A stretch of DNA of 64,000 bases from the sequence record LR535910.1. One strand, written 5' to 3'. The notes under the pieces are model-generated. The model was not told where the DNA came from and searched no databases. It saw only the letters and a program-made list of their open reading frames with translations. The position numbers and the translations under genes were made by a program. Below, piece by piece: positions 5,431 through 57,757 of this stretch (position 1 is the first letter of the stretch; each line of letters opens with the position of its first letter).

Positions 5431-8381
5431 TCGGTATCGTGACGGTTGTACGACAGTACGATGTCATCTTTCAAACCGATGTCGCCATTGGCTTCAATAT
5501 CGAGCTTCTTACCAATTGTAGCTCGCGCTGCTTCGGTAATGACAGTGAACAGTCGCAGGTCTTTATCTGGCCCCATGTCGTCGAGTTCAACACCGATAAT
5601 GGCATCGTTAAGCGTATTGCGTAACGCATTACCGATCTCGGTTGCTGAAACGGTCAGATGTGTTGACAGATAGTCGTTAATGACTTGCGAAGTCCGTTTC
5701 CGGATTTGTGCCAGAAGCTCGCTGTTTGCTCGGTTCGCTGCCGTGAGGTAATATTTGACAGTGAACTGGTTTTCAGCAGGCAGTGGTGACACAACCCCGT
5801 CTTCGGTACGTACGTCGATATAACCCATCGTAGTGATAGGAACAAAGAAACCTTCAGTTTGCTCCAACAGCAGCGGTTTCAGATTCGGCAGTACCACCGT
5901 AACGTAGTTGATGATATTGTCAATCACGCTATCAAGGTACGCTTTAACCGCTTTCGAGGTTGCGAACTTATAACGAGCATCGAAGACAGCCATTTCACTA
6001 CGGAACTTAATACTGCGCGGCTTCGCAATAATAGGCTGACCGTTCCCGTCGAAGATTTGTTCCCCAACGTGGTGTGCGATTTCTTGCTCACCGGTGGCCG
6101 GGTCTATTTTCGGATCGCCTTTGCGATGCAGATACGTGATTTGCAACGGTGGAACAGCATCAGGGTCGTACGTGTACTCAGGCGTTACGCCATCGTCTTT
6201 GGTTTTAATAACATCCTTTTCCCAATACGCCAGAACGTCCTCCTGGTAGTATTCGTAGTTGATGCTGTCCGTTACTGCACGTGCTTTTCGCCAGTAATAG
6301 GACATGGCTTTACCCAGCTCGATTTTGAAAATCTCATGAGTAATCCCAATACCATCGCGCGCAGGTGGTACAATCATTGTATCCATTTCAGCACGTTCGT
6401 AATTACCGGGGTAGTAACCCGTACAGCCGTAGAACACGTTATACTCGGTTAACAACGGTGCAGGTGTGTCCACATCCACTTCGGTGGTGATTCGGGTGTT
6501 GTTGATAATCAGCTCATCGTTACGGTCAACGTCGAGATTGGTTTTCAACAAGAATTCCCATACACGCTCCGAACCTTGACGACCCACTAAGGTGCCGTTG
6601 ATGTACGCCAGCTTACCGTCTGCGTTGCGTGGCGAGAAGGAAATCTGCGCAAAGACTTGGTCATCACTTAACGCCTGGTATGGCGGTTCTGATTTAGTCA
6701 CAGTGCGCAGGATATAACCTTCGGCCGTTTTCTCAATCTGATAATCTGCAGTGACAACACTCAGCTCCGTTGTCACGTTGGTGCTAACGAAACGTTTTGA
6801 GTTCAACTGCGGTTTATCGAGTTGGTAAATACGAACATCGCAAGATTTGTTGTTAATGTCCACCACGTAATGGAACGGCGTGAACAGGTAACGGTTAGTG
6901 TTACCCGCGTTAACCAAATCTTCTTTACGCATGGTCTTCGCAAGGATGGTCATCTCCGCATCGATTTGCAGACTGGTATCCGTAAAGCGATACAGTGTAT
7001 CTGGCTCAATTGTCAAACGGTTGCCGTTAATACGGACCGTCGGCAGTTTCACCAGTTCATCCCAGCTAAAGTACAGCGGGGCGGTGATGGTCCCGATAGG
7101 GGAACTCACTTTAGATAACGTGGACTCCGGCATCGGCGCAGTCAGGAAGTAAGTACGCCCAGTTACGTAGTCGTTTGGCTTAGACAAGGTCAGGCCGTAA
7201 TCCGATACCGTGGCTTCTAACTGTTTCTCTGTTACTGGCAGTTTGCGAATCCCCACTGCATTGTTTACCACACGGTCACGCAACTCATCAAACGAAAGTT
7301 GTGTACGCCCCCCGGTGGCGTAACTGCCTTCTTCCGCAACCAGCATTTTGATGGAGAATGATTTCAACGGGTTGATATATCCCGCATCGTATTCACCGTT
7401 CAAGTCGCGCAATGAGAAGGTGTACTCGTCCGCCGGAAATGCAGAAACGTCGAGGTCGAGTGGCCCGATGGTCGTATATACGTCCATGCGGATTTCACCA
7501 CTTACCAGGTTCTTCGCCATGTAGATAGACGGTATCGTACAACGAATGGACTGGTTAACGACTTGAATCAGCGCCGTAGGCGTGTTTGGATCGTAAACGT
7601 CACGACTGTGCGTGTGGTGGATTTCTGTCCAGGTGTTTGAATTGGACGGTTTATTCCACACCCGTGCGTAGAAGAACTTGTTGGTGAACGTGCGCGTCAT
7701 CACAAAAGTGTTCTGCCCCAACAACGTATCGTTCTCGTCCTTTACACTGTACTGCATCACCGGAATACGGATAGCCAGTATCTGCGACGGTGTGCTAGGA
7801 ACACTTGTCAGTTCCCAGTCCAACGCGTTAGTGGTTACGGGCGATATCGGTGACTGAGTTTCGGTAATCCACAAGACCTGGAAGGCTGGATTATCAACGG
7901 TACCATACGGCAGCACTCGAATTTCGATGGGATACTGAATGGCAAAGTTGTAACCTGAAACAGTAAAGATGGTATCCCGTGGAATCACGACTTTACGAAT
8001 ACCTGCCACGTTTAACGGCATCGCCTTCGCTAATAGAGAGTCGACATCTAGAAGCAGAAGTAAGGTCGCTTGTGATGGCTGGGCAAAAACATCGACATAA
8101 TCCACGTCAGACATGTGGCGGAACAGATCATCGTGAGTTTGTGCCATAGAGGGGAACATTTTCGGAATGGTGTCCCGATCGCCCTGGATAATAGTGTGGC
8201 CCATCGTAATTCCGACCTCGGTCATGTAGACCACCGGGTCGGTCGGGTCACGTAGCAGGATTTGCCCGTCGGCGTCCTGCACGTCTTGGAGCTGGTTCAG
8301 CATTAATGACTGCATTGCTGACGGGTTATGTGCCATCAGCAGCAAGTCTTTCGATAATGCGTCGTACGTTTTCGTAGTCAT
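5421..8381 (-). CDS. Large virion structural protein, probable baseplate wedge (SPN3US gp48/phiKZ gp87-like)
   Basis: 986 aa, beta-rich; size and position match recalled synteny. Confidence 0.7.
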   Translation of the reverse strand: MTTKTYDALSKDLLLMAHNPSAMQSLMLNQLQDVQDADGQILLRDPTDPVVYMTEVGITMGHTIIQGDRDTIPKMFPSMAQTHDDLFRHMSDVDYVDVFAQPSQATLLLLLDVDSLLAKAMPLNVAGIRKVVIPRDTIFTVSGYNFAIQYPIEIRVLPYGTVDNPAFQVLWITETQSPISPVTTNALDWELTSVPSTPSQILAIRIPVMQYSVKDENDTLLGQNTFVMTRTFTNKFFYARVWNKPSNSNTWTEIHHTHSRDVYDPNTPTALIQVVNQSIRCTIPSIYMAKNLVSGEIRMDVYTTIGPLDLDVSAFPADEYTFSLRDLNGEYDAGYINPLKSFSIKMLVAEEGSYATGGRTQLSFDELRDRVVNNAVGIRKLPVTEKQLEATVSDYGLTLSKPNDYVTGRTYFLTAPMPESTLSKVSSPIGTITAPLYFSWDELVKLPTVRINGNRLTIEPDTLYRFTDTSLQIDAEMTILAKTMRKEDLVNAGNTNRYLFTPFHYVVDINNKSCDVRIYQLDKPQLNSKRFVSTNVTTELSVVTADYQIEKTAEGYILRTVTKSEPPYQALSDDQVFAQISFSPRNADGKLAYINGTLVGRQGSERVWEFLLKTNLDVDRNDELIINNTRITTEVDVDTPAPLLTEYNVFYGCTGYYPGNYERAEMDTMIVPPARDGIGITHEIFKIELGKAMSYYWRKARAVTDSINYEYYQEDVLAYWEKDVIKTKDDGVTPEYTYDPDAVPPLQITYLHRKGDPKIDPATGEQEIAHHVGEQIFDGNGQPIIAKPRSIKFRSEMAVFDARYKFATSKAVKAYLDSVIDNIINYVTVVLPNLKPLLLEQTEGFFVPITTMGYIDVRTEDGVVSPLPAENQFTVKYYLTAANRANSELLAQIRKRTSQVINDYLSTHLTVSATEIGNALRNTLNDAIIGVELDDMGPDKDLRLFTVITEAARATIGKKLDIEANGDIGLKDDIVLSYNRHDTEKE

Positions 8382-44143: not shown

Positions 44144-44782
44144 ATGCAATTACAATTTCGTCAACGGTCTGTACTACTACCGTTTAGCGCTATATTAGGT
44201 TCGTTTACCAAAATGCTGTCTGTGGATTTTATTGCAGCTGAGAAAGAAGCGCTGTTATTGGCGGCAGTCGAAGAAGTATTGTGGGAGGCGTTTTACGTAG
44301 TGCCGTTTCGTAGCTGCTTAAACGCCCCGTATGTTGAAGGGCAGTTTGTCAGCGCGCTTTCCGCTGCAATTACCAAACGTAAACTAAATGCCATGGCACA
44401 CGTCAAAGAGATCACCGCGCAACGAGGACGGATATTCGCTACCGTCAGAAATGTGTTAATTAAAGAAGGGTTTCTTGCAGATGCGTTAGGTCCCGAAGTT
44501 CCTTGGGAACCGGGTCATCCGCCGCGTCAGTTTGACCACGGGTACAAGTTAAGTATAATTATGCCACGCGGTAAGCGTGACGTCTCATTGGGGAAATGGT
44601 TACAGATAAGTTGGGTTCGTCCTACTATCGATTGGCAAGAAATGTCGGTCAATCGCTATCTGGAACACCTGGCAAAAACACCGGCACAGTTTCACCGTTC
44701 AACAATCCTGCCGCTACACATGCTGTTAAAACCGTCCCTGTCATTGGCAGAAGCCAGATACCTGCTTAGTGGAGAGAAGTGA
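44144..44782 (+). CDS. Hypothetical protein
   Basis: 212 aa; AAGGA RBS; overlaps GNAT start. Confidence 0.85.
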   Translation: MQLQFRQRSVLLPFSAILGSFTKMLSVDFIAAEKEALLLAAVEEVLWEAFYVVPFRSCLNAPYVEGQFVSALSAAITKRKLNAMAHVKEITAQRGRIFATVRNVLIKEGFLADALGPEVPWEPGHPPRQFDHGYKLSIIMPRGKRDVSLGKWLQISWVRPTIDWQEMSVNRYLEHLAKTPAQFHRSTILPLHMLLKPSLSLAEARYLLSGEK

Positions 44783-45264
44783 TGCTTGTTATTAATGTGG
44801 TCGAGGATAAGATTCCCGCGAATGTTTATCCTGAACTGGTTGAATGGGTACGCGACTTAAACAGTATCCGCGAGGAGCCTATTAAACTCACGATGTTTGT
44901 TGAGGATGATATCGTGCGGGGAATCATGGCATGGGAACCTGGCCATTTGGTCTATATGGTTGTGCCCGAAGAATCGCGGCGGGGCGGTGTCGGCAGATTT
45001 ATGCTTAAGTATCTTCAGCAGAACTCCGATCGTAAACACATCAGCTGTCGTGTTCACCCGACCAACATTCCCGCGCTAGGATTCTTTCACCAACAAGGCT
45101 TCCAGATTGACCGATGGTATATTGCTGCTGACGGCCAACGGTATTTTCGTATGACGAACTACAATGTTATTTCGTCACACACGCCGCCGGAGGAAAAGCT
45201 TTTAACTCATTACGCTGAAAGCGTTCCCATTTTTCTTTCGATGGCAGAAGGTCATTTCGTCTAA
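44779..45264 (+). CDS. GNAT-family acetyltransferase
   Basis: YMVVPEESRRGGVGRFML (motif A RxxGxG) and VHPTNIPALGFFHQQGF (motif B). Confidence 0.88.
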   Translation: MMLVINVVEDKIPANVYPELVEWVRDLNSIREEPIKLTMFVEDDIVRGIMAWEPGHLVYMVVPEESRRGGVGRFMLKYLQQNSDRKHISCRVHPTNIPALGFFHQQGFQIDRWYIAADGQRYFRMTNYNVISSHTPPEEKLLTHYAESVPIFLSMAEGHFV

Positions 45265-47852: not shown

Positions 47853-48986
47853 ATGTCGACGCTCGATTTAGATTTAGAAGTCCTGACTGACGACCACGAT
47901 CGCCTGGTCGCACTCGAAGGTCTGGGAGTTAAGCCCGACTTCCCTGCGGTTTGCGCGATCCGTCAGCGTTGGTGCTTAACCGACGACGGTGAAGATATGT
48001 TGGTTGCTCGTGAATCGCGCGAAGCGATGGAGCGTGCTCAGTTTATGACTGATACTGACCCGCGGGCTGGCATCCATCGCGCAGCAGGGCGCATTACTGC
48101 GAAAGCTGTTAAAGGTACTGGAAAGTTAGTGGGTGCTGGACTAGGTGCAACCGCAAAGGGCGCGGGTAAACTTTCGAAAAAGCTCGCATTACGCTTTTAC
48201 GATTTCGCGGAAGCGCTAGCGAAAGAACAAGCCGACCGTTTGAAAGAAATAACTTCGAAAGCTGCTTTCATGGAACGTAAGCTCAATAAGCTTAAAACGC
48301 GAATGTCGCTGCTAGATAACCACAAAACACTCGCTGCGGTCGACGTTCACACGAGTAGCTGGACGTCTAAAATTTGCTTTGAAGATCGACCCGATTTTGA
48401 AGCGTGTGTTAAGTTTTCTAAACAAACAAATGCGTACGAAGGCGTCGTGCAAAAGTACACGGTTTACACACGCACCGCTCTGAAGAAAAGCAAAGCATTC
48501 GAAGGGCCGGGCTTAAAACAAATCAGCAAGTCCACGAACTGGGCAGTTAAGCGTGCTGCTGGGTTGCTTGGCATCATCGATCCCTTTAAAAAGGTGGAAG
48601 CTTTTCCTGTCCCTGGAAATATCGTTGTGGTTGAGCACTATAGTGGTAAGGTCAGTTGGGCAATTGCGCGTGACGGTGAGTATGGTGAAACCATTAAATC
48701 GCTGGATATGCATCAGTGTGGGAAAGCAATAGAGGCTGTGGAAGCACTTATCAAATCTATTGCTGCACGTGGAACAAAGAACCGTGTTGTGGGCTACACC
48801 GGCATTTACGAAGAAGTGGAAGCGATGAAGTCCGAGCTTAAGAACCTAGAAGGGGATGAGCTGAAGGAGGCCACGTTACGTTACCGTAATGCAATGGCGA
48901 TGGAAGACGCTTTCACCACGGCGTTGGTACGTGTGGCGGAGGGTCTAATGGAGTGGACGAAGCAATCGTTGGCTGAGGTGAAATGA
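47853..48986 (+). CDS. Divergent third paralog of the inner head protein family
   Basis: 377 aa; ALEG and ARES sites; TSSWTSKICFEDRPD, FPVPGNIVV and ALVRVAEGLMEW align in order with SGGFISKLSIEGDFD, ALPGNAYV and VGNTVISGLNGY of the 12365 protein. Confidence 0.7.
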   Translation: MSTLDLDLEVLTDDHDRLVALEGLGVKPDFPAVCAIRQRWCLTDDGEDMLVARESREAMERAQFMTDTDPRAGIHRAAGRITAKAVKGTGKLVGAGLGATAKGAGKLSKKLALRFYDFAEALAKEQADRLKEITSKAAFMERKLNKLKTRMSLLDNHKTLAAVDVHTSSWTSKICFEDRPDFEACVKFSKQTNAYEGVVQKYTVYTRTALKKSKAFEGPGLKQISKSTNWAVKRAAGLLGIIDPFKKVEAFPVPGNIVVVEHYSGKVSWAIARDGEYGETIKSLDMHQCGKAIEAVEALIKSIAARGTKNRVVGYTGIYEEVEAMKSELKNLEGDELKEATLRYRNAMAMEDAFTTALVRVAEGLMEWTKQSLAEVK

Positions 48987-49450
48987 TGAAAATTGTTTTT
49001 GTCACCAAGCCCAACTCTCCGTATGGAAAGAAATACTACGCGGACTTGTTAGGACTACACAACAAGTTATACGACGATCAGAAAATAAAACTTGCCGACT
49101 TAAACGGTCGTGAAGGGTTTAATCAAATCTCAAAACTGGAGGAGGTTTGGGGTGAAGGTACGCTGTGCGCTTGCGCCGTTGATGACCGTGGTGTGGCTGT
49201 TGGCTTCATCACCTTTGGCTACACCAAAAAGGGACAACGTTTCCTCTGGGTATATAACTTTTTTGTAGATGAATCGGTTCGTTCACAAGGCGTTGGTCAT
49301 GAACTGATCGAAGCCGTAGAGAACTATGGCAAATCAAAAGGTTGCGCGTGGATGCAGCTTAACGTGCTCGGTAATAACGACCGTGCTATTGCGTTTTATG
49401 AACGTTTCGGATTCCGAACTGAATACCAGGATATGGTAAAGGAGCTTTAA
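48983..49450 (+). CDS. GNAT-family acetyltransferase
   Basis: NFFVDESVRSQGVGHELI and QLNVLGNNDRAIAFYERFGF are canonical motifs A and B; ATGA coupling. Confidence 0.93.
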   Translation: MMKIVFVTKPNSPYGKKYYADLLGLHNKLYDDQKIKLADLNGREGFNQISKLEEVWGEGTLCACAVDDRGVAVGFITFGYTKKGQRFLWVYNFFVDESVRSQGVGHELIEAVENYGKSKGCAWMQLNVLGNNDRAIAFYERFGFRTEYQDMVKEL

Positions 49451-51784: not shown

Positions 51785-51807
51785 CTTTTTGCTTCCAGTC
51801 CACTAAA

Positions 51808-52697: not shown

Positions 52698-53354
52698 ATG
52701 GCGAAGGCCCCTAAAACTGTAGCAAAAGATTCAATGGCAAGCAACGCGATTAAAGCCACAAAAACGCGTACTACCGAATCTCCACGCTCACCTACCATTC
52801 CTAAACCGGATGTAATTGTACCGATCAGCGAGCGTCTGAAAACAATTCACATCGAGCGCGAATATCCGATTGACCTTGGTCAGGAAATCGTTGCGGTTAA
52901 CCTTGGTAGCGACGTACGCTTTACCATCTATAAAGGCGCGCATCTGAACAACATGGTGCTAACCCGTGGTGATGAAGTTATCGGTCTGTCTCGTTACGAC
53001 ACGCAAATCGAAAACATCTATCCGGTGTTTGCAGTAGCGATGTTGCGTTTGTTCATGCAGGATAAAGCCGACCTTTGTGGTCAGCTTGCGGGTATGGCGG
53101 ATCGTGTTGGTCATATTCTGCCGACGCTGGTGAAACTGTACCCAGTTACGATTGACGTGGCGTTTACTACTGTAGACAACAACCACGGTTATATCGTGCT
53201 GACCAAAGACGGTAAAGTTATCGCTGGTAATCTGACTGATAACGAAGTGCAGAAGCATATGGACAAATTTGCGTTCATGGTGAATCGCTTGGCGCACGTC
53301 AGTGTCAAACATTCTGAAACTTGGACGACGCTTGTCTCCAAACCTGAACTGTAA
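52698..53354 (+). CDS. Hypothetical protein with disordered basic N-terminus
   Basis: 218 aa from ATG 52698 with TAAGGAG RBS. Confidence 0.85.
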   Translation: MAKAPKTVAKDSMASNAIKATKTRTTESPRSPTIPKPDVIVPISERLKTIHIEREYPIDLGQEIVAVNLGSDVRFTIYKGAHLNNMVLTRGDEVIGLSRYDTQIENIYPVFAVAMLRLFMQDKADLCGQLAGMADRVGHILPTLVKLYPVTIDVAFTTVDNNHGYIVLTKDGKVIAGNLTDNEVQKHMDKFAFMVNRLAHVSVKHSETWTTLVSKPEL

Positions 53355-53358
53355 TCAT

Positions 53359-53395
53359 TAAGGGGTCTTCGGACCCCTTAATTTTTTGTCTTTTT
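53359..53395 (+). terminator. Intrinsic terminator
   Basis: TAAGGGGTC-TTCG-GACCCCTTA plus T-tract. Confidence 0.9.
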
Positions 53396-53416
53396 ACGCG
53401 TTATCCTCATGTTGTG
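53394..53416 (+). promoter_or_regulatory. TTAC-N15-TGTG putative middle promoter
   Basis: TTAC 53394-97, TGTG 53413-16. Confidence 0.55.
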
Positions 53417-53443
53417 ACAGCATTACCTTTTGAGGGCATTACA

Positions 53444-54445
53444 ATGAAAACTGTGGCTAAATTGTTCCGCAGCAGCATTCGCTCTGCCGAGTTCCAAAAT
53501 AACGTCGGTACCGATACTGTACGAGCACGCCGCCTAAAAGAGTTTCTAAAGGACGAGACTTATTCTGTTTACGTGGTACGGAATAAAGAAACCTGGGAGG
53601 GTTATTTAGTGGCCACCTATCGACACGGTGACCCTACACTAACCTGTCACTATTTTGAGGAGTTTGTACCTGGGGCATTCGATAAAGTTGGTTTAGCCCT
53701 TGTGCTCGACCACACAGGCTTCGAATATATGTCGTGCCCGGCACCTACTGGCGATGTTGAACAAAAACTGGTCGAAAAAGGGTTTGTTCTTTCAGATATC
53801 GTCTGGGCATGTCATTCTAAACTGTTTGATAAAGTAATAACTGCATCGGAAATCAAGATTATTTCTGGTGACGCATACGCAGAACTTTCCAAGGACGACA
53901 AAGACGTTATCCTGAATCTGGTCAGTGGTGCAATTTGCGAAGAGCTAGAGTACGATGTGCGCGGCCACTATACGCACATTGGTCCGTTAGCAGAAACAGT
54001 AATAGCAAGAATTCAGCACGCTAATGTGGAAACCGCGATTTGGCGAGACGGGCGTGATATCGTCGGCATTGCCCAAATGCGTTTGGTCGCGCCAGGCGTC
54101 GTTGAACTTTCTGGCTTGACGGTTGCACCTACGCATCGTAAACGTGGCATTGGTCGCCGGCTAATGGGTGCGCTATTCGATTTCGCACAACGTCATTCCG
54201 ACCAAGTCTATATTGAAACAGCTGCTGATAATAATCCAGCAAATCACCTGTATGGTAACATCCTACGTTGCAAACAGGTACTGCGTACACTAACGTTGAA
54301 ACGCGACCCTGAGCTTATTAGCTGGAAACGCGTAAAAGGGAACCGCGCCGACCGAGTGCTGAAAGAAGAACCTAGCCTCCCGGTGGAGACCAACCCCAGA
54401 CCAACGATTAATGACATGTTTCAATCTGGCATGAGAGGATGCTAA
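53444..54445 (+). CDS. Tandem-GNAT acetyltransferase (degenerate N-domain, canonical C-domain)
   Basis: 333 aa from ATG 53444; LSGLTVAPTHRKRGIGRRLM and IETAADNNPANHLY; N-half ends QKLVEKGF. Confidence 0.85.
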   Translation: MKTVAKLFRSSIRSAEFQNNVGTDTVRARRLKEFLKDETYSVYVVRNKETWEGYLVATYRHGDPTLTCHYFEEFVPGAFDKVGLALVLDHTGFEYMSCPAPTGDVEQKLVEKGFVLSDIVWACHSKLFDKVITASEIKIISGDAYAELSKDDKDVILNLVSGAICEELEYDVRGHYTHIGPLAETVIARIQHANVETAIWRDGRDIVGIAQMRLVAPGVVELSGLTVAPTHRKRGIGRRLMGALFDFAQRHSDQVYIETAADNNPANHLYGNILRCKQVLRTLTLKRDPELISWKRVKGNRADRVLKEEPSLPVETNPRPTINDMFQSGMRGC

Positions 54446-54448
54446 CGG

Positions 54449-55267
54449 GTGATAAGACCAATTTTAAAATGGATGGGCGGTAAGAGTCGTGTACTGCCCG
54501 AGCTTCTACAGGTGCTTCCGGATGCTGAGTATTTCGTTGAACCGTTTGTGGGTGCAGGGTCAGTGTTTTTAAACACTAAATACCCGAACTATATTCTCGG
54601 CGACACGAACCCGGACTTAATCGAGTTACTAACCATGGCGCGCGATCGTCCGGAAGCGTTGATACTGGAAGCAAAGGCGCTCTTTGCAAATGGGCTGGAC
54701 CGCGGTCTGTACATGAAACGGCGTGAGGAATTTAACAGCGAGACAACCACGGGGAAACCTAATCTCCAGCGCGCTGCGATGTTCCTGTATCTTACACGTC
54801 ATGGTTACAACGGCTTGTGCAGATACAATCAGTCGGGTGGGTTTAACGTGCCCTATGGTCAACATCCGAACGGTGTCTATTTCCCTGAAGAGGAAATTCT
54901 GGCGTGGGCAAAACGTTGTTCGGAAACCAACGTCGAGCTGCTCTGCGCCGACTTCCGCGACATCCTAAATAAGTGCCCATCTAACGCAGTGATATACGCT
55001 GACCCGCCATACATCCCACTTTCGGATACGGCTAAACATGCGCAGTATCACAGCAAGGAATTTTCACAAGCTGACCACCGCGAGTTAGCGAAACTTTTAA
55101 AACAACAAGCTGCCGATGGCAATAAGGTCGTTCTGTCAAACGCAGATACGTTACTCACACGTGACATCTACTACGGTTTTACCTGGCGTGAAGTTCAGGT
55201 GGGTCGATATATGTCCGCCGATGCGAATAAACGTAAAGCGGTGACAGAGCTAATCGGCACCTTATAA
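54449..55267 (+). CDS. dam: DNA adenine methyltransferase, Dam family
   Basis: LKWMGGKSR, EPFVGAGSVFL, GYNGLCRYN..GGFNVPYG, YADPPY. Confidence 0.95.
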   Translation: MIRPILKWMGGKSRVLPELLQVLPDAEYFVEPFVGAGSVFLNTKYPNYILGDTNPDLIELLTMARDRPEALILEAKALFANGLDRGLYMKRREEFNSETTTGKPNLQRAAMFLYLTRHGYNGLCRYNQSGGFNVPYGQHPNGVYFPEEEILAWAKRCSETNVELLCADFRDILNKCPSNAVIYADPPYIPLSDTAKHAQYHSKEFSQADHRELAKLLKQQAADGNKVVLSNADTLLTRDIYYGFTWREVQVGRYMSADANKRKAVTELIGTL

Positions 55268-55276
55268 GGTACCAAC

Positions 55277-56080
55277 ATGCAACTATTTAATCTATACGGT
55301 ATGGACAAAAATGACCTGACCGTAGAGTTTAGTGGTCGATTGACCACCTTGGGGCAACTCCGTGAACGGATTCAAGATTTGCGACCCGTCGCAGACCAAG
55401 AAGACGATCATTGGTTAGTGTTGAGCAATAGCGGTCGTGCGCAAATGTATTTTCGTGGATGTCGTTCAGGTATTGTTTACTACATCTACGAGTTGCACGT
55501 GCTTTCCGAGCCCCTGTTCCACGAGTGGAAGCGTTTAACGCGACTCCTGGAAGTGCAGATGCTTGATATCACCTGTTTTCCGCATGACACCGAACATGCG
55601 GCATTGTACCAACGACTGGGGTTCGAAGCTGTAACGAAGCGCGTGGAGATTACTGTCAGTCCGAAATACGGTTTTACGTCAGACCCATCGGTTGTCCCGT
55701 TGGAGACATTGTCATTAGAACAAACCCAGGATGTTTGCTATCTAATGCGACCTACGCTAAAAGACGCAGGAACGCGTGAGATGCTGGGTGAATTAGCAAA
55801 TGGTTTTGTCTCTGCGTTCGTGGGGTTGCACGGTCAGAAACCGTTTTCATTAATGCTTTATAAGGAGTTCCCGAAGAGCATCATTACTGAGCAATTCTGC
55901 TGCCAAACTTTTGACCCGATTGCCTACTCGGTAGAGTTTCTAAAACACTACCACGCCATTTTGCATTTGGCGGGACAGAAAGGTAAGAAGGTCAACATGG
56001 GTGTTGCGATAGAGCACGAGTTTCCTTCTATCGAAGGGTTAGAGTATCGTGTAATCACGCATCACTACACCCTTGCGTAA
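55277..56080 (+). CDS. Degenerate tandem-GNAT-fold protein
   Basis: 267 aa; LDITCFPHDTEHAALYQRLGF is a GNAT motif-B-like segment; no RxxGxG motif A. Confidence 0.6.
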   Translation: MQLFNLYGMDKNDLTVEFSGRLTTLGQLRERIQDLRPVADQEDDHWLVLSNSGRAQMYFRGCRSGIVYYIYELHVLSEPLFHEWKRLTRLLEVQMLDITCFPHDTEHAALYQRLGFEAVTKRVEITVSPKYGFTSDPSVVPLETLSLEQTQDVCYLMRPTLKDAGTREMLGELANGFVSAFVGLHGQKPFSLMLYKEFPKSIITEQFCCQTFDPIAYSVEFLKHYHAILHLAGQKGKKVNMGVAIEHEFPSIEGLEYRVITHHYTLA

Positions 56081-56089
56081 GGAGAGAAT

Positions 56090-56902
56090 ATGCTGAGAGT
56101 TATTGAACGCACGGAGAGGATTCTGGACCGAACGTGGTTGGAAGACCGTAAAGCGTTATCGTTGTTAAATGACATCGATCCTTCCACGTTACAAGATGAA
56201 CGTCGTCTTTACTACCGAATCTTTGAAGTTTTCAGTCGGGACACAGTTGCGCCCGACGCGATTGTACTCTGTCTGGACCACGGATACATGTTAGAAGTTA
56301 TCAACATGGTTCGTGCTTTAGACGCCCAGTTAACCTCGCTTGCGGATGCTTTACTCCGCTCAGCGGGGTGTAACTACGCGATGCATTTTACTCGTTCGGA
56401 AGGGGACGAATATGCTCGCATGGGCTTTTGTTGTGAAACGATAAACTACCGCAAAATTAATACATCGGTGCCTAGCCACGATGAGGATTTCTGCGGGGAT
56501 GTCAGTTCGTTGTTCGATAGTAAGAAAGCGTTCTTGGATTGGGTTAGGATGCTTTACGGTACAAGCTCTATCTACTCAACGCTCGTTATGGGCGGGAGGC
56601 TGATGTCATGGCGGAGCAGCGATAGTTACAAACTGACAGTGCTCTCACATCGTGGACAACGCTGGGTTATTGGTGGATGGTTTACCGCAGAAGGGGTGGT
56701 TACCCTAAGCCGTGAGGAGTTCGGACTGTTGATGCATTGTATCCAATCCGAATTACCGGTGGGGGATGAATTAGTTTACACTTACCACCAATATACTGGG
56801 GGACCAGCCGCAATGTGGTTATTAGAAAACGGTTGGCTACCCGAAAGTTATGTGTACGGACGTGCCCTGAAAACTACTAATGGAGAAAATAATGCAAATT
56901 AA
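56090..56902 (+). CDS. Degenerate tandem-GNAT-fold protein
   Basis: 270 aa; EYARMGF mid-protein and PAAMWLLENGW near the end both resemble GNAT C-terminal motifs; AAGGAG RBS. Confidence 0.5.
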   Translation: MLRVIERTERILDRTWLEDRKALSLLNDIDPSTLQDERRLYYRIFEVFSRDTVAPDAIVLCLDHGYMLEVINMVRALDAQLTSLADALLRSAGCNYAMHFTRSEGDEYARMGFCCETINYRKINTSVPSHDEDFCGDVSSLFDSKKAFLDWVRMLYGTSSIYSTLVMGGRLMSWRSSDSYKLTVLSHRGQRWVIGGWFTAEGVVTLSREEFGLLMHCIQSELPVGDELVYTYHQYTGGPAAMWLLENGWLPESYVYGRALKTTNGENNAN

Positions 56903-57170
56903 TCGTACAGTGTCGAAGTCTAAAGAAGTCGTTTACAACGTTGAAGACGGTGATGTAATGCAGTTCCGTGCCGTTATTGACGAACAGCACGTACTCCAAG
57001 TTGTTTATTCGAAAGAAGAGATGACTCGTGCACATAGTCGCGTGTTGGAAAAGCTCGTCGCGAAAGCCAAACAACGCGACGGCATTAAATCCTACAACGT
57101 TATGTACGGTTATCAGTTACGTGAGGTGGAAGGGGAGCTGTTAATCACCCCTGTTCCGGTAACGGCGTAA
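56892..57170 (+). CDS. Hypothetical protein
   Basis: 92 aa from ATG 56892 with GGAG RBS. Confidence 0.8.
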   Translation: MQINRTVSKSKEVVYNVEDGDVMQFRAVIDEQHVLQVVYSKEEMTRAHSRVLEKLVAKAKQRDGIKSYNVMYGYQLREVEGELLITPVPVTA

Positions 57171-57210
57171 TTCGCCATTGTATGACCCTTAAACACCGTT
57201 GAGGTTAACT

Positions 57211-57693
57211 ATGGATATGATCGAATTAGGTCAGCTCCCTCAGCACGATTTCGATTTAGGCGTGCGCCATGAGGAAGGGGCCGACGCGAACACACTAATG
57301 GCCCGCTACTACGAGCTACTGACCGGTCAACCGTTGGACGATGAACACATCAACCGTTTTGAAAAACTGTTGGCACAACTCATCACCTCTAACGCAGAAC
57401 GCATTGGCATGTTGAACGAAATGAACTTTGCCGATGTAGAGCCGTCTGACGCTCAGAAGATTCTTATCGATGGTCCTGTGCCAAGCGATGAAGTACAAGA
57501 CCTTCTGGCAGGTATCCGTGCAGGCTTCGATGAAGCTGCTGAGAAATACGCGGAAGAGCTGGCAGATGTCGATTTGGCTGCGCCGGTTGACCCGAATCCG
57601 TCTGCAGAGGAGACGGCGGCTGCGAAATTGAAACTCGCGCGCTTTATCTGCGCAGCCGTCCTGACAGACGACCGCGAAGAAAACCAACTGTAA
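57211..57693 (+). CDS. Acidic helical hypothetical protein, possibly virion
   Basis: 160 aa from ATG 57211 with GAGG RBS; TATG at 57181 upstream. Confidence 0.8.
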   Translation: MDMIELGQLPQHDFDLGVRHEEGADANTLMARYYELLTGQPLDDEHINRFEKLLAQLITSNAERIGMLNEMNFADVEPSDAQKILIDGPVPSDEVQDLLAGIRAGFDEAAEKYAEELADVDLAAPVDPNPSAEETAAAKLKLARFICAAVLTDDREENQL

Positions 57694-57699
57694 GGTTTG

Positions 57700-57736
57700 C
57701 CTCCTTGCCCACGGGTAAGGAGGTCCCTTTTTATTT
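57700..57736 (+). terminator. Intrinsic terminator
   Basis: CCTCCTTGCC-CACG-GGTAAGGAGG plus T-tract. Confidence 0.75.
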
Positions 57737-57757
57737 ACATCAGTCCACTAACTTATG
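57735..57757 (+). promoter_or_regulatory. TTAC-N15-TATG putative middle promoter
   Basis: TTAC 57735-38, TATG 57754-57. Confidence 0.55.

Follow-up and report, generated by a model that had tools for sequence, protein, structure and literature searches.

A dam methylase gene among tandem-GNAT-fold genes in a predicted operon of Salmonella phage SPFM13

Introduction

Phage Mu Mom is a GNAT-fold enzyme that hypermodifies adenine, and its expression depends on Dam; this link is transcriptional and regulatory, not enzymatic. A second group of interest is formed by the tandem-GNAT acetyltransferases MshD, Eis, MAB_4324, clavulanate ORF14, VipF and GlmA, which carry two GNAT domains in a chain of about 270-340 amino acids, commonly one domain with motif A and one degenerate domain. 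FemABX, MprF and L/F-transferase have double GNAT-like folds without the acetyl-CoA P-loop and use donors such as aminoacyl-tRNA. Here we describe a predicted operon, gp104-gp109, in which a dam gene lies among genes for tandem-GNAT-fold proteins. It was analysed in a 64,000-nucleotide stretch, hereafter the window, of the record LR535910.1 from Salmonella phage SPFM13. This phage belongs to Seoulvirus and is an SPN3US-like, phiKZ-related, nucleus-forming jumbo phage. SPN3US is about 95% identical over the 4.7-kb operon region; the names gp104-gp109 follow its numbering, and its annotation gives gp104 as a GNAT protein, gp105 as Dam, and gp106-gp109 as hypothetical proteins.

The locus resembles these systems in part. 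As in Mu, phage GNAT-fold proteins occur in a genome where Dam methylation matters; however, Mom is a single-domain protein accompanied by a com gene, and the Dam that acts on the mom promoter is encoded by the host, whereas here dam is a phage gene. gp106 and gp107 have two GNAT domains in a chain of the same length class as the tandem-GNAT acetyltransferases, and gp104 likewise combines a motif-A domain with a degenerate one. Unlike the known tandem GNATs, gp106 and gp107 have lost motif A from both domains, match no sequence family, and are confined to one phage clade. They share the double GNAT-like fold without P-loop with FemABX, the MprF C-domain and L/F-transferase, but match acetyl-CoA enzymes far better, and no tRNA-binding or coiled-coil insertion is evident. 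gp105 is like E. coli Dam and the orphan Dams of phages (T4, P1 and others) in its full-length EcoDam match and in having no cognate endonuclease; unlike theirs, its gene sits inside a GNAT paralog array of a nucleus-forming phage. We favour a co-transcribed accessory operon that combines an orphan Dam, one acetyltransferase and acetyl-CoA-independent GNAT paralogs, at a rough probability of 0.45.

Results

Organization of the gp104-gp109 unit

The features of the unit, all on the + strand, are as follows.

53356..53383, + strand: intrinsic-terminator-like hairpin with an 11-bp stem and a T-run, closing the upstream unit
53384..53400, + strand: T-run-GTCTTTTTAC element directly 3' of this terminator; candidate promoter of a phage RNA polymerase
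53444..54445, + strand: gp104, putative tandem-GNAT acetyltransferase (Pfam match of the C-domain, profile alignment, BFVD model)
54449..55267, + strand: gp105, EcoDam-like orphan N6-adenine DNA methyltransferase (Pfam, TIGRFAM, PDB, PADLOC)
55277..56080, + strand: gp106, tandem-GNAT-fold protein; motif A is missing from both domains (AlphaFold2, Foldseek)
56090..56902, + strand: gp107, second tandem-GNAT-fold protein without motif A, a fast-evolving paralog (AlphaFold2, Foldseek)
56892..57170, + strand: gp108, conserved 92-amino-acid (aa) protein with function unassigned (phrog_7896); overlaps the end of gp107
57211..57693, + strand: gp109, conserved acidic 160-aa protein and last gene of the unit (phrog_8221)
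57700..57723, + strand: intrinsic-terminator-like hairpin, closing the gp104-gp109 unit

A preliminary description had placed a tightly packed unit of a tandem-GNAT gene, dam, two genes for proteins of about 270 aa and a small gene at 53394-57170, behind a single upstream promoter motif. The open reading frames (ORFs) and the gaps of 3-9 nt are as described: the junctions of gp104, dam, gp106, gp107 and gp108 are gaps of 3, 9 and 9 nt followed by an overlap of 11 nt. The end of the unit, however, had been set too early. A strong terminator, consisting of a hairpin and a T-run, stands on each side of the region, at 53356-53383 and at 57700-57723, and none is found inside, so that the predicted transcription unit includes gp109, beyond 57170, and comprises six genes at 53444-57693 on the + strand. 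The single strand, the short or overlapping junctions and the presence of terminators at both flanks only are those of a single transcription unit. Tight packing alone is uninformative, because short intergenic gaps are usual throughout 42-60 kb of the window.

As for the promoter motif, a sigma-70 scan found no sigma-70-like site 5' of the unit, but a conserved element is present there. The T-run-GTCTTTTTAC element is kept 5' of the gp104 orthologues in 10 related loci, and the terminator hairpin before it is found at the equivalent position in all related loci; a terminator followed by a T-run-TTTTTAC element stands 5' of the unit in all lineages examined. In Erwinia phage Asesino, which is without gp104, the T-run-GTCTTTTTAC element stands immediately 5' of dam. 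The exact 12-mer of the element occurs at one place only in the window. Together, the terminator and the T-run-GTCTTTTTAC element would act as a combined terminator and promoter, the latter for an RNA polymerase of the phage.

On the + strand of the window, a long GC-rich hairpin with a TTCG-type loop and a T-run occurs every 1-6 kb, at positions that include 5388, 14990, 25487, 30328, 44051, 46157, 46863, 51726, 53356, 57700 and 58511. Past many of these hairpins there is a T-rich stretch that ends in TTAC, a pattern suggestive of a regular arrangement of terminators and promoters. It should be mentioned that an 11-mer, CAGTCCACTAA, occurs at 51796-51806 and 57741-57751, about 45-70 nt past two terminators, with no other copy in the window. 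One site lies upstream of a helix-turn-helix (HTH) gene and the other upstream of the 57790 gene; the 11-mer is not present 5' of the gp104-gp109 unit. A motif TATATATTAC also precedes the HTH gene. CAGTCCACTAA and TATATATTAC are possibly promoter elements.

gp104 has two GNAT domains, one of them with motif A

For gp104, the ATG at 53444 is the preferred start, with GAGG 8 nt upstream; a GTG at 53414 is possible as an alternative. Pfam GNAT matches are confined to residues of about 206-280 (PF00583, E 6e-14), and PDB profile matches to about 180-280. The sequence RKRGIG (residues 232-237) in the C-domain is the sole match to the motif A pattern [QR]xxGx[GA] in the protein, and the N-domain is degenerate. 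The assignment as a tandem GNAT is made because the gp104 profile aligns collinearly with the gp106 profile and the gp106 model matches the model of the Kwan gp104 orthologue, as described below. Profile and model thus agree with the earlier view that gp104 has two GNAT domains and that motif A is intact in the C-domain alone. Within the gp104 family, motif A is intact in Seoulvirus-like phages and in the metagenomic contig L022, and is relaxed to xxxRIG in Erwinia lineages. gp104 is predicted to be an N-acetyltransferase that uses acetyl-CoA and has a protein or a small molecule as acceptor.

gp106 and gp107 have tandem-GNAT folds without motif A

AlphaFold2 models of gp106 and gp107, built from alignments of their orthologues, are confident. 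The gp106 model has a mean predicted local distance difference test score (pLDDT) of 87 and a predicted template modelling score (pTM) of 0.71; the values for gp107 are 82 and 0.56. Two successive GNAT-like beta-alpha units are seen in each model. In Foldseek searches of the PDB, the best matches were to tandem GNATs, with E values of 4e-10 for gp106 and 2e-6 for gp107 and a probability of 1.0. The top structures were almost solely of this group, namely VipF, MAB_4324, clavulanate ORF14, Eis and GlmA. The TM-scores to tandem GNATs are just 0.3-0.5, because the orientation of the domains differs.

Motif A is missing from both domains. At the beta4-alpha3 positions, where motif A serves to bind pyrophosphate, none of the 17 gp106-family members and none of the 11 gp107-family members has [QR]xxGx[GA] in either domain. 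This bears out the proposal that the products of the genes at 55277 and 56090 are GNAT-fold proteins without motif A. Pfam gave no match for gp106 or gp107 at E<=1, FemAB (PF02388) included, and NCBIfam and PADLOC gave nothing for gp106-gp109. Trp84, Arg122 and His263 of gp106 are near-invariant. We infer that gp106 and gp107 are either binding or scaffold proteins, non-catalytic for acetyl-CoA, or transferases for another donor.

The second of these possibilities could be taken further: both proteins might be active transferases with a donor such as aminoacyl-tRNA or acyl-acyl carrier protein, in the manner of FemABX, MprF and L/F-transferase. FemX, MprF, Sbb17 and L/F-transferase are among the lower-ranked Foldseek matches, and the missing motif A and the strong purifying selection described below would fit such an enzyme. 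These matches, however, have E values of 1e-3 to 1e-7, against 1e-10 for the acetyl-CoA tandem GNATs; there is no match to Pfam FemAB or another family, and no conserved catalytic constellation was identified. We consider this more specific reading improbable.

Paralogy and selection

Pairwise BLASTP among gp104, gp106 and gp107 detected no similarity, and their relation is seen only by profile-profile and structure comparison. The gp104-family and gp106-family profiles are collinear over 205 columns (hhalign probability 86%, E 4.6e-6). In BFVD, the model of the gp104 orthologue from Kwan matches the gp106 model over both domains, with a TM-score of 0.68 and an E value of 1e-14 (Foldseek). The genes at the gp107 position in Wellingtonvirus and Huxley match the gp106 family (hhalign 70%, E 4e-5), and gp107 itself gives a weak profile match to it (hhalign E 1.7e-3) and shares the fold. 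gp104 and gp106 are therefore paralogs, to which gp107 is joined more weakly, on fold. The three are most readily taken as a diverged local paralog family, and this accounts for the adjacency of their genes without recourse to chance. No further paralogs were found when profiles of the three families were searched against all ORFs of the window with hmmsearch.

The upstream gene gp103 (52698-53354) was suspected to be GNAT-like, as Kwan and Huxley proteins of about 215 aa match the gp106 model in BFVD; the alignment of these positional counterparts is poor. The Kwan proteins of 215, 253, 224 and 259 aa had no phmmer match in the window.

Ratios of nonsynonymous to synonymous substitution (dN/dS) were obtained from SPFM13 and SPN3US, between which dS is 0.16-0.32 across the operon. 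The ratio is 0.09 for gp104, 0.04 for dam, 0.11 for gp107 and 0.014 for gp109. For gp106, dN is 0 over 267 codons at a dS of 0.24, and dN is also 0 for gp108, so that both ratios are 0. All six genes are thus under purifying selection, which means that the degenerate copies are not decaying.

gp105 and the GATC content of the window

gp105 is a complete methyltransferase of the EcoDam type. It matches PF02086 (E 1e-53; 183 bits, cut-off 22) and TIGR00571 (258 bits, cut-off 115), and its alignment with E. coli Dam spans the full length (2g1p, E 6e-58). The catalytic motif DPPY (in YADPPYIP) is aligned to that of EcoDam, and the target-recognition segments GYNGLCRYN and FNVP of EcoDam are kept in the alignment. 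The score for the equivalog NF008152 is 247, under its cut-off of 441. PADLOC classes gp105 as an orphan methyltransferase. From this alignment, gp105 is probably specific for GATC.

Among the 4-bp palindromes of the window, GATC shows the strongest depletion: 118 sites are observed and 309 are expected from trinucleotide frequencies, an observed-to-expected ratio (O/E) of 0.38. The next most depleted is CTAG, with an O/E of 0.58. gp105 is in this respect unlike E. coli Dam and the known phage Dams, since it is encoded in a genome 2.6-fold depleted in GATC.

The preliminary description had suggested a Mom-like, methyl-plus-acyl pathway on adenine, in which phage DNA would be modified by Dam together with the GNAT-fold proteins. 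A DNA methylase gene does adjoin GNAT-fold genes, Mom demonstrates that a GNAT fold is able to modify adenine, and the GATC depletion indicates that GATC-directed pressure exists. Nevertheless, Mu Mom (sequence from NC_000929) shows no relation to the gp104, gp106 and gp107 profiles, with hhalign E values of 0.39, 0.65 and 0.1, respectively. No com-like gene and no small overlapping ORF were found upstream of the unit, and the upstream region 53355-53443 contains 0 GATC sites. Because the Mom-Dam link of Mu is transcriptional, it provides no precedent for an enzymatic methyl-plus-acyl pathway. In addition, the sole motif-A protein is dispensable in one lineage, and literature searches gave no account of unusual DNA for SPN3US-like phages. 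A pathway of this type is very improbable.

Distribution and synteny

Searches with tblastn found gp106 in 64, gp104 in 59 and gp107 in 49 phage records, all from jumbo phages of Salmonella, Escherichia, Proteus or Erwinia. When 1.84 billion protein representatives were searched in full with HMMER, the gp106-family profile gave 11 clusters only, and word-indexed profile searches found nothing for gp106 or gp104 outside the clade. The gene orders are given below, where X is the gp106 orthologue, Y the gene at the gp107 position, and s a small gp108-like gene.

Seoulvirus, Machinavirus (Huxley), Wellingtonvirus and several metagenomic relatives: GNAT-Dam-X-Y-small-gp109
Erwinia phages Caitlin and ChrisDB: GNAT-Dam-X-Y-small-gp109, with an extra Y copy
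Erskinevirus (Asesino, phiEaH2, Stratton): Dam-X-Y-s, without gp104
L022 (metagenomic contig): GNAT-Dam-X-s, without Y

At least five lineages, all in a single syntenic clade of phages, have this order. The linkage to dam, which had been expected to be conserved, is present in every relative examined, all of them inside this clade. The whole neighbourhood (Tmk-HTH-...) is common to all these genomes; for this reason the conserved linkage is not independent evidence of coupling. In these searches none of the GNAT families occurs outside the clade, which leaves no independent instance of the linkage. According to lineage, gp104 is lost, gp107 is absent or an extra gp107-type copy is present. This means that the GNAT members are individually dispensable, which fits accessory paralogs rather than steps of one pathway.

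This distribution bears on a second function that had been put forward, a hetero-oligomeric acetyltransferase centred on gp104, in which gp104 would be catalytic and gp106 and gp107 would be substrate adaptors for host proteins, in defence evasion or takeover. One active-looking and two degenerate paralogs do occur in one predicted transcript, and the tandem GNATs among the PDB matches usually couple an active with an inactive domain. Phage GNATs targeting host proteins also exist (Rac, AcrVA5); Rac is cited in PMC13282480. LUZ19 Rac and AcrVA5 serve takeover or anti-defence and are plausible functional analogues of gp104, compared by function alone and not by sequence; they are single-domain enzymes, unlike gp104. 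The lineages argue against the complex: Erskinevirus keeps dam, gp106 and gp107 without gp104, and L022 has gp104 and gp106 without gp107, so that the parts appear to function separately. Such an enzyme is unlikely.

Alternatively, Dam could form a functional module with gp106, and perhaps with gp108 and gp109 as well, in which the tandem-GNAT pseudoenzyme partners the methylase. The partner might, for example, change the specificity, processivity, stability or phage-nucleus localisation of Dam, or read or extend the N6-methyladenine (m6A) mark. The set dam-gp106-gp108-gp109 is invariant in all lineages seen, with its tight or overlapping junctions kept, and the complete lack of nonsynonymous change in gp106 and the position of the Asesino terminator-promoter element immediately 5' of dam point in the same direction. 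On the other hand, every case is in one syntenic clade, with no independent co-occurrence, and gp105 is a complete EcoDam-like enzyme, while E. coli Dam needs no partner. We regard this module as rather unlikely, with an appreciable chance of being correct.

The paralog array may be larger in some lineages. In Caitlin and ChrisDB the extra Y-type gene follows gp107 (7610-8374 of loci L019 and L020). Wellingtonvirus-like phages have four extra genes, for proteins of 215, 253, 224 and 259 aa, upstream of the GNAT gene (locus L010, 1975-5042); the 215-aa protein matches the gp106 model in BFVD with an E value of 1.5e-7.

In the sister records of SPFM1, 5-10, 12, 14, 15 and 20 (LR535901, LR535903-08, LR535911-13, LR535917), the region is matched in about 40 short pieces at about 50% coverage, and the encoded proteins look frameshifted (e.g. 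SPFM7_00174). This patchiness looks like error-rich assembly, not biology.

gp108, gp109 and the neighbouring single-domain GNAT genes

gp108 and its Wellingtonvirus orthologue are related with a phmmer E value of 3e-18. gp109 is kept across genera (phmmer 2.5e-35) and is strongly acidic, with an isoelectric point of 4.1 and 35 Asp or Glu against 12 Lys or Arg residues. It could be a DNA mimic or anti-restriction-type protein.

Two further GNAT genes lie upstream of the unit.

44779..45264, + strand: single-domain GNAT with motif A RRGGVG (PF00583, 26.2 bits; phrog_7861)
48983..49450, + strand: single-domain GNAT with motif A RSQGVG (PF00583, E 9e-18)

With them, five GNAT-fold genes are found within 12.1 kb, in agreement with the 12 kb first reported. 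Several terminators part the two genes from gp104-gp109, and they belong to separate units. There is a 4-nt overlap between the gene at 48983 and the stop of the gene upstream of it, which encodes a phiKZ_IP-type internal head protein (pair 47853-49450). A GNAT gene and a phiKZ_IP gene are likewise adjacent in the distant relative L022 (1-978).

Discussion

The operon layout and the fold and paralogy of gp106 and gp107 appear to be undescribed, although the components are from known superfamilies. Nothing on SPN3US gp104-gp109, on DNA modification in phages of this type or on phage-encoded tandem GNATs came up in the literature searched.

In the accessory operon that we favour, one tandem-GNAT gene has been the source of a small local paralog family. 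Dam would methylate GATC on phage DNA. A Dam of its own might be needed by the phage, since the phage nucleus keeps host enzymes out, and GATC methylation would shield incoming DNA against restriction directed to GATC sites without the methyl group. gp104 would acetylate a protein or small-molecule acceptor from acetyl-CoA, and gp106 and gp107 would bind or scaffold, or transfer from another donor. The genes would share a promoter and a temporal class without being steps of one DNA methyl-plus-acyl pathway, and their co-location might reflect shared timing and origin by duplication. The loss of gp104 in Erskinevirus argues against an obligate pathway or complex centred on this protein. A joint function of the methylase and the GNAT proteins is speculative, and neither of the two functions put forward in the preliminary description gained support from the tests made here.

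Several points weigh against the accessory operon. gp106, with a dN of 0, is under tighter constraint than Dam itself, which is unusual for a mere scaffold. The dam-gp106-gp108-gp109 core occurs in every lineage with junctions of -4 to 12 nt, which is compatible with a partnership of Dam and gp106. The activity of gp104 is a prediction, as the orthologues from Erwinia phages have a relaxed motif A. Furthermore, the literature searches gave no experimental work that deals with expression, localisation, substrates or modified DNA for phages of this type.

It is quite improbable, yet worth stating, that the invariant dam-gp106(-gp108-gp109) core acts inside the phage nucleus as a methylase module of a new type, with gp104 and gp107 as optional accessories. 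If so, a catalytically re-purposed tandem GNAT could work with Dam, either by adding a second group on or close to m6A, by reading such a group, or by redirecting Dam; this would be a DNA-modification or epigenetic counter-defence system without a described relative.

The present analysis newly assigns a fold, that of tandem GNATs, and a paralogy to two conserved hypothetical genes of SPN3US, the genetic model of the enterobacterial nucleus-forming jumbo phages, in which the fold of most genes is unassigned. The GATC depletion in a genome with its own Dam raises the question of which GATC-directed pressure acts before the phage nucleus forms. If the linkage of Dam and gp106 is functional, it would represent a novel mode of DNA modification or management by a phage; if it is not, gp106 and gp107 would still be a clear example of GNAT pseudoenzymes that a virus has kept.

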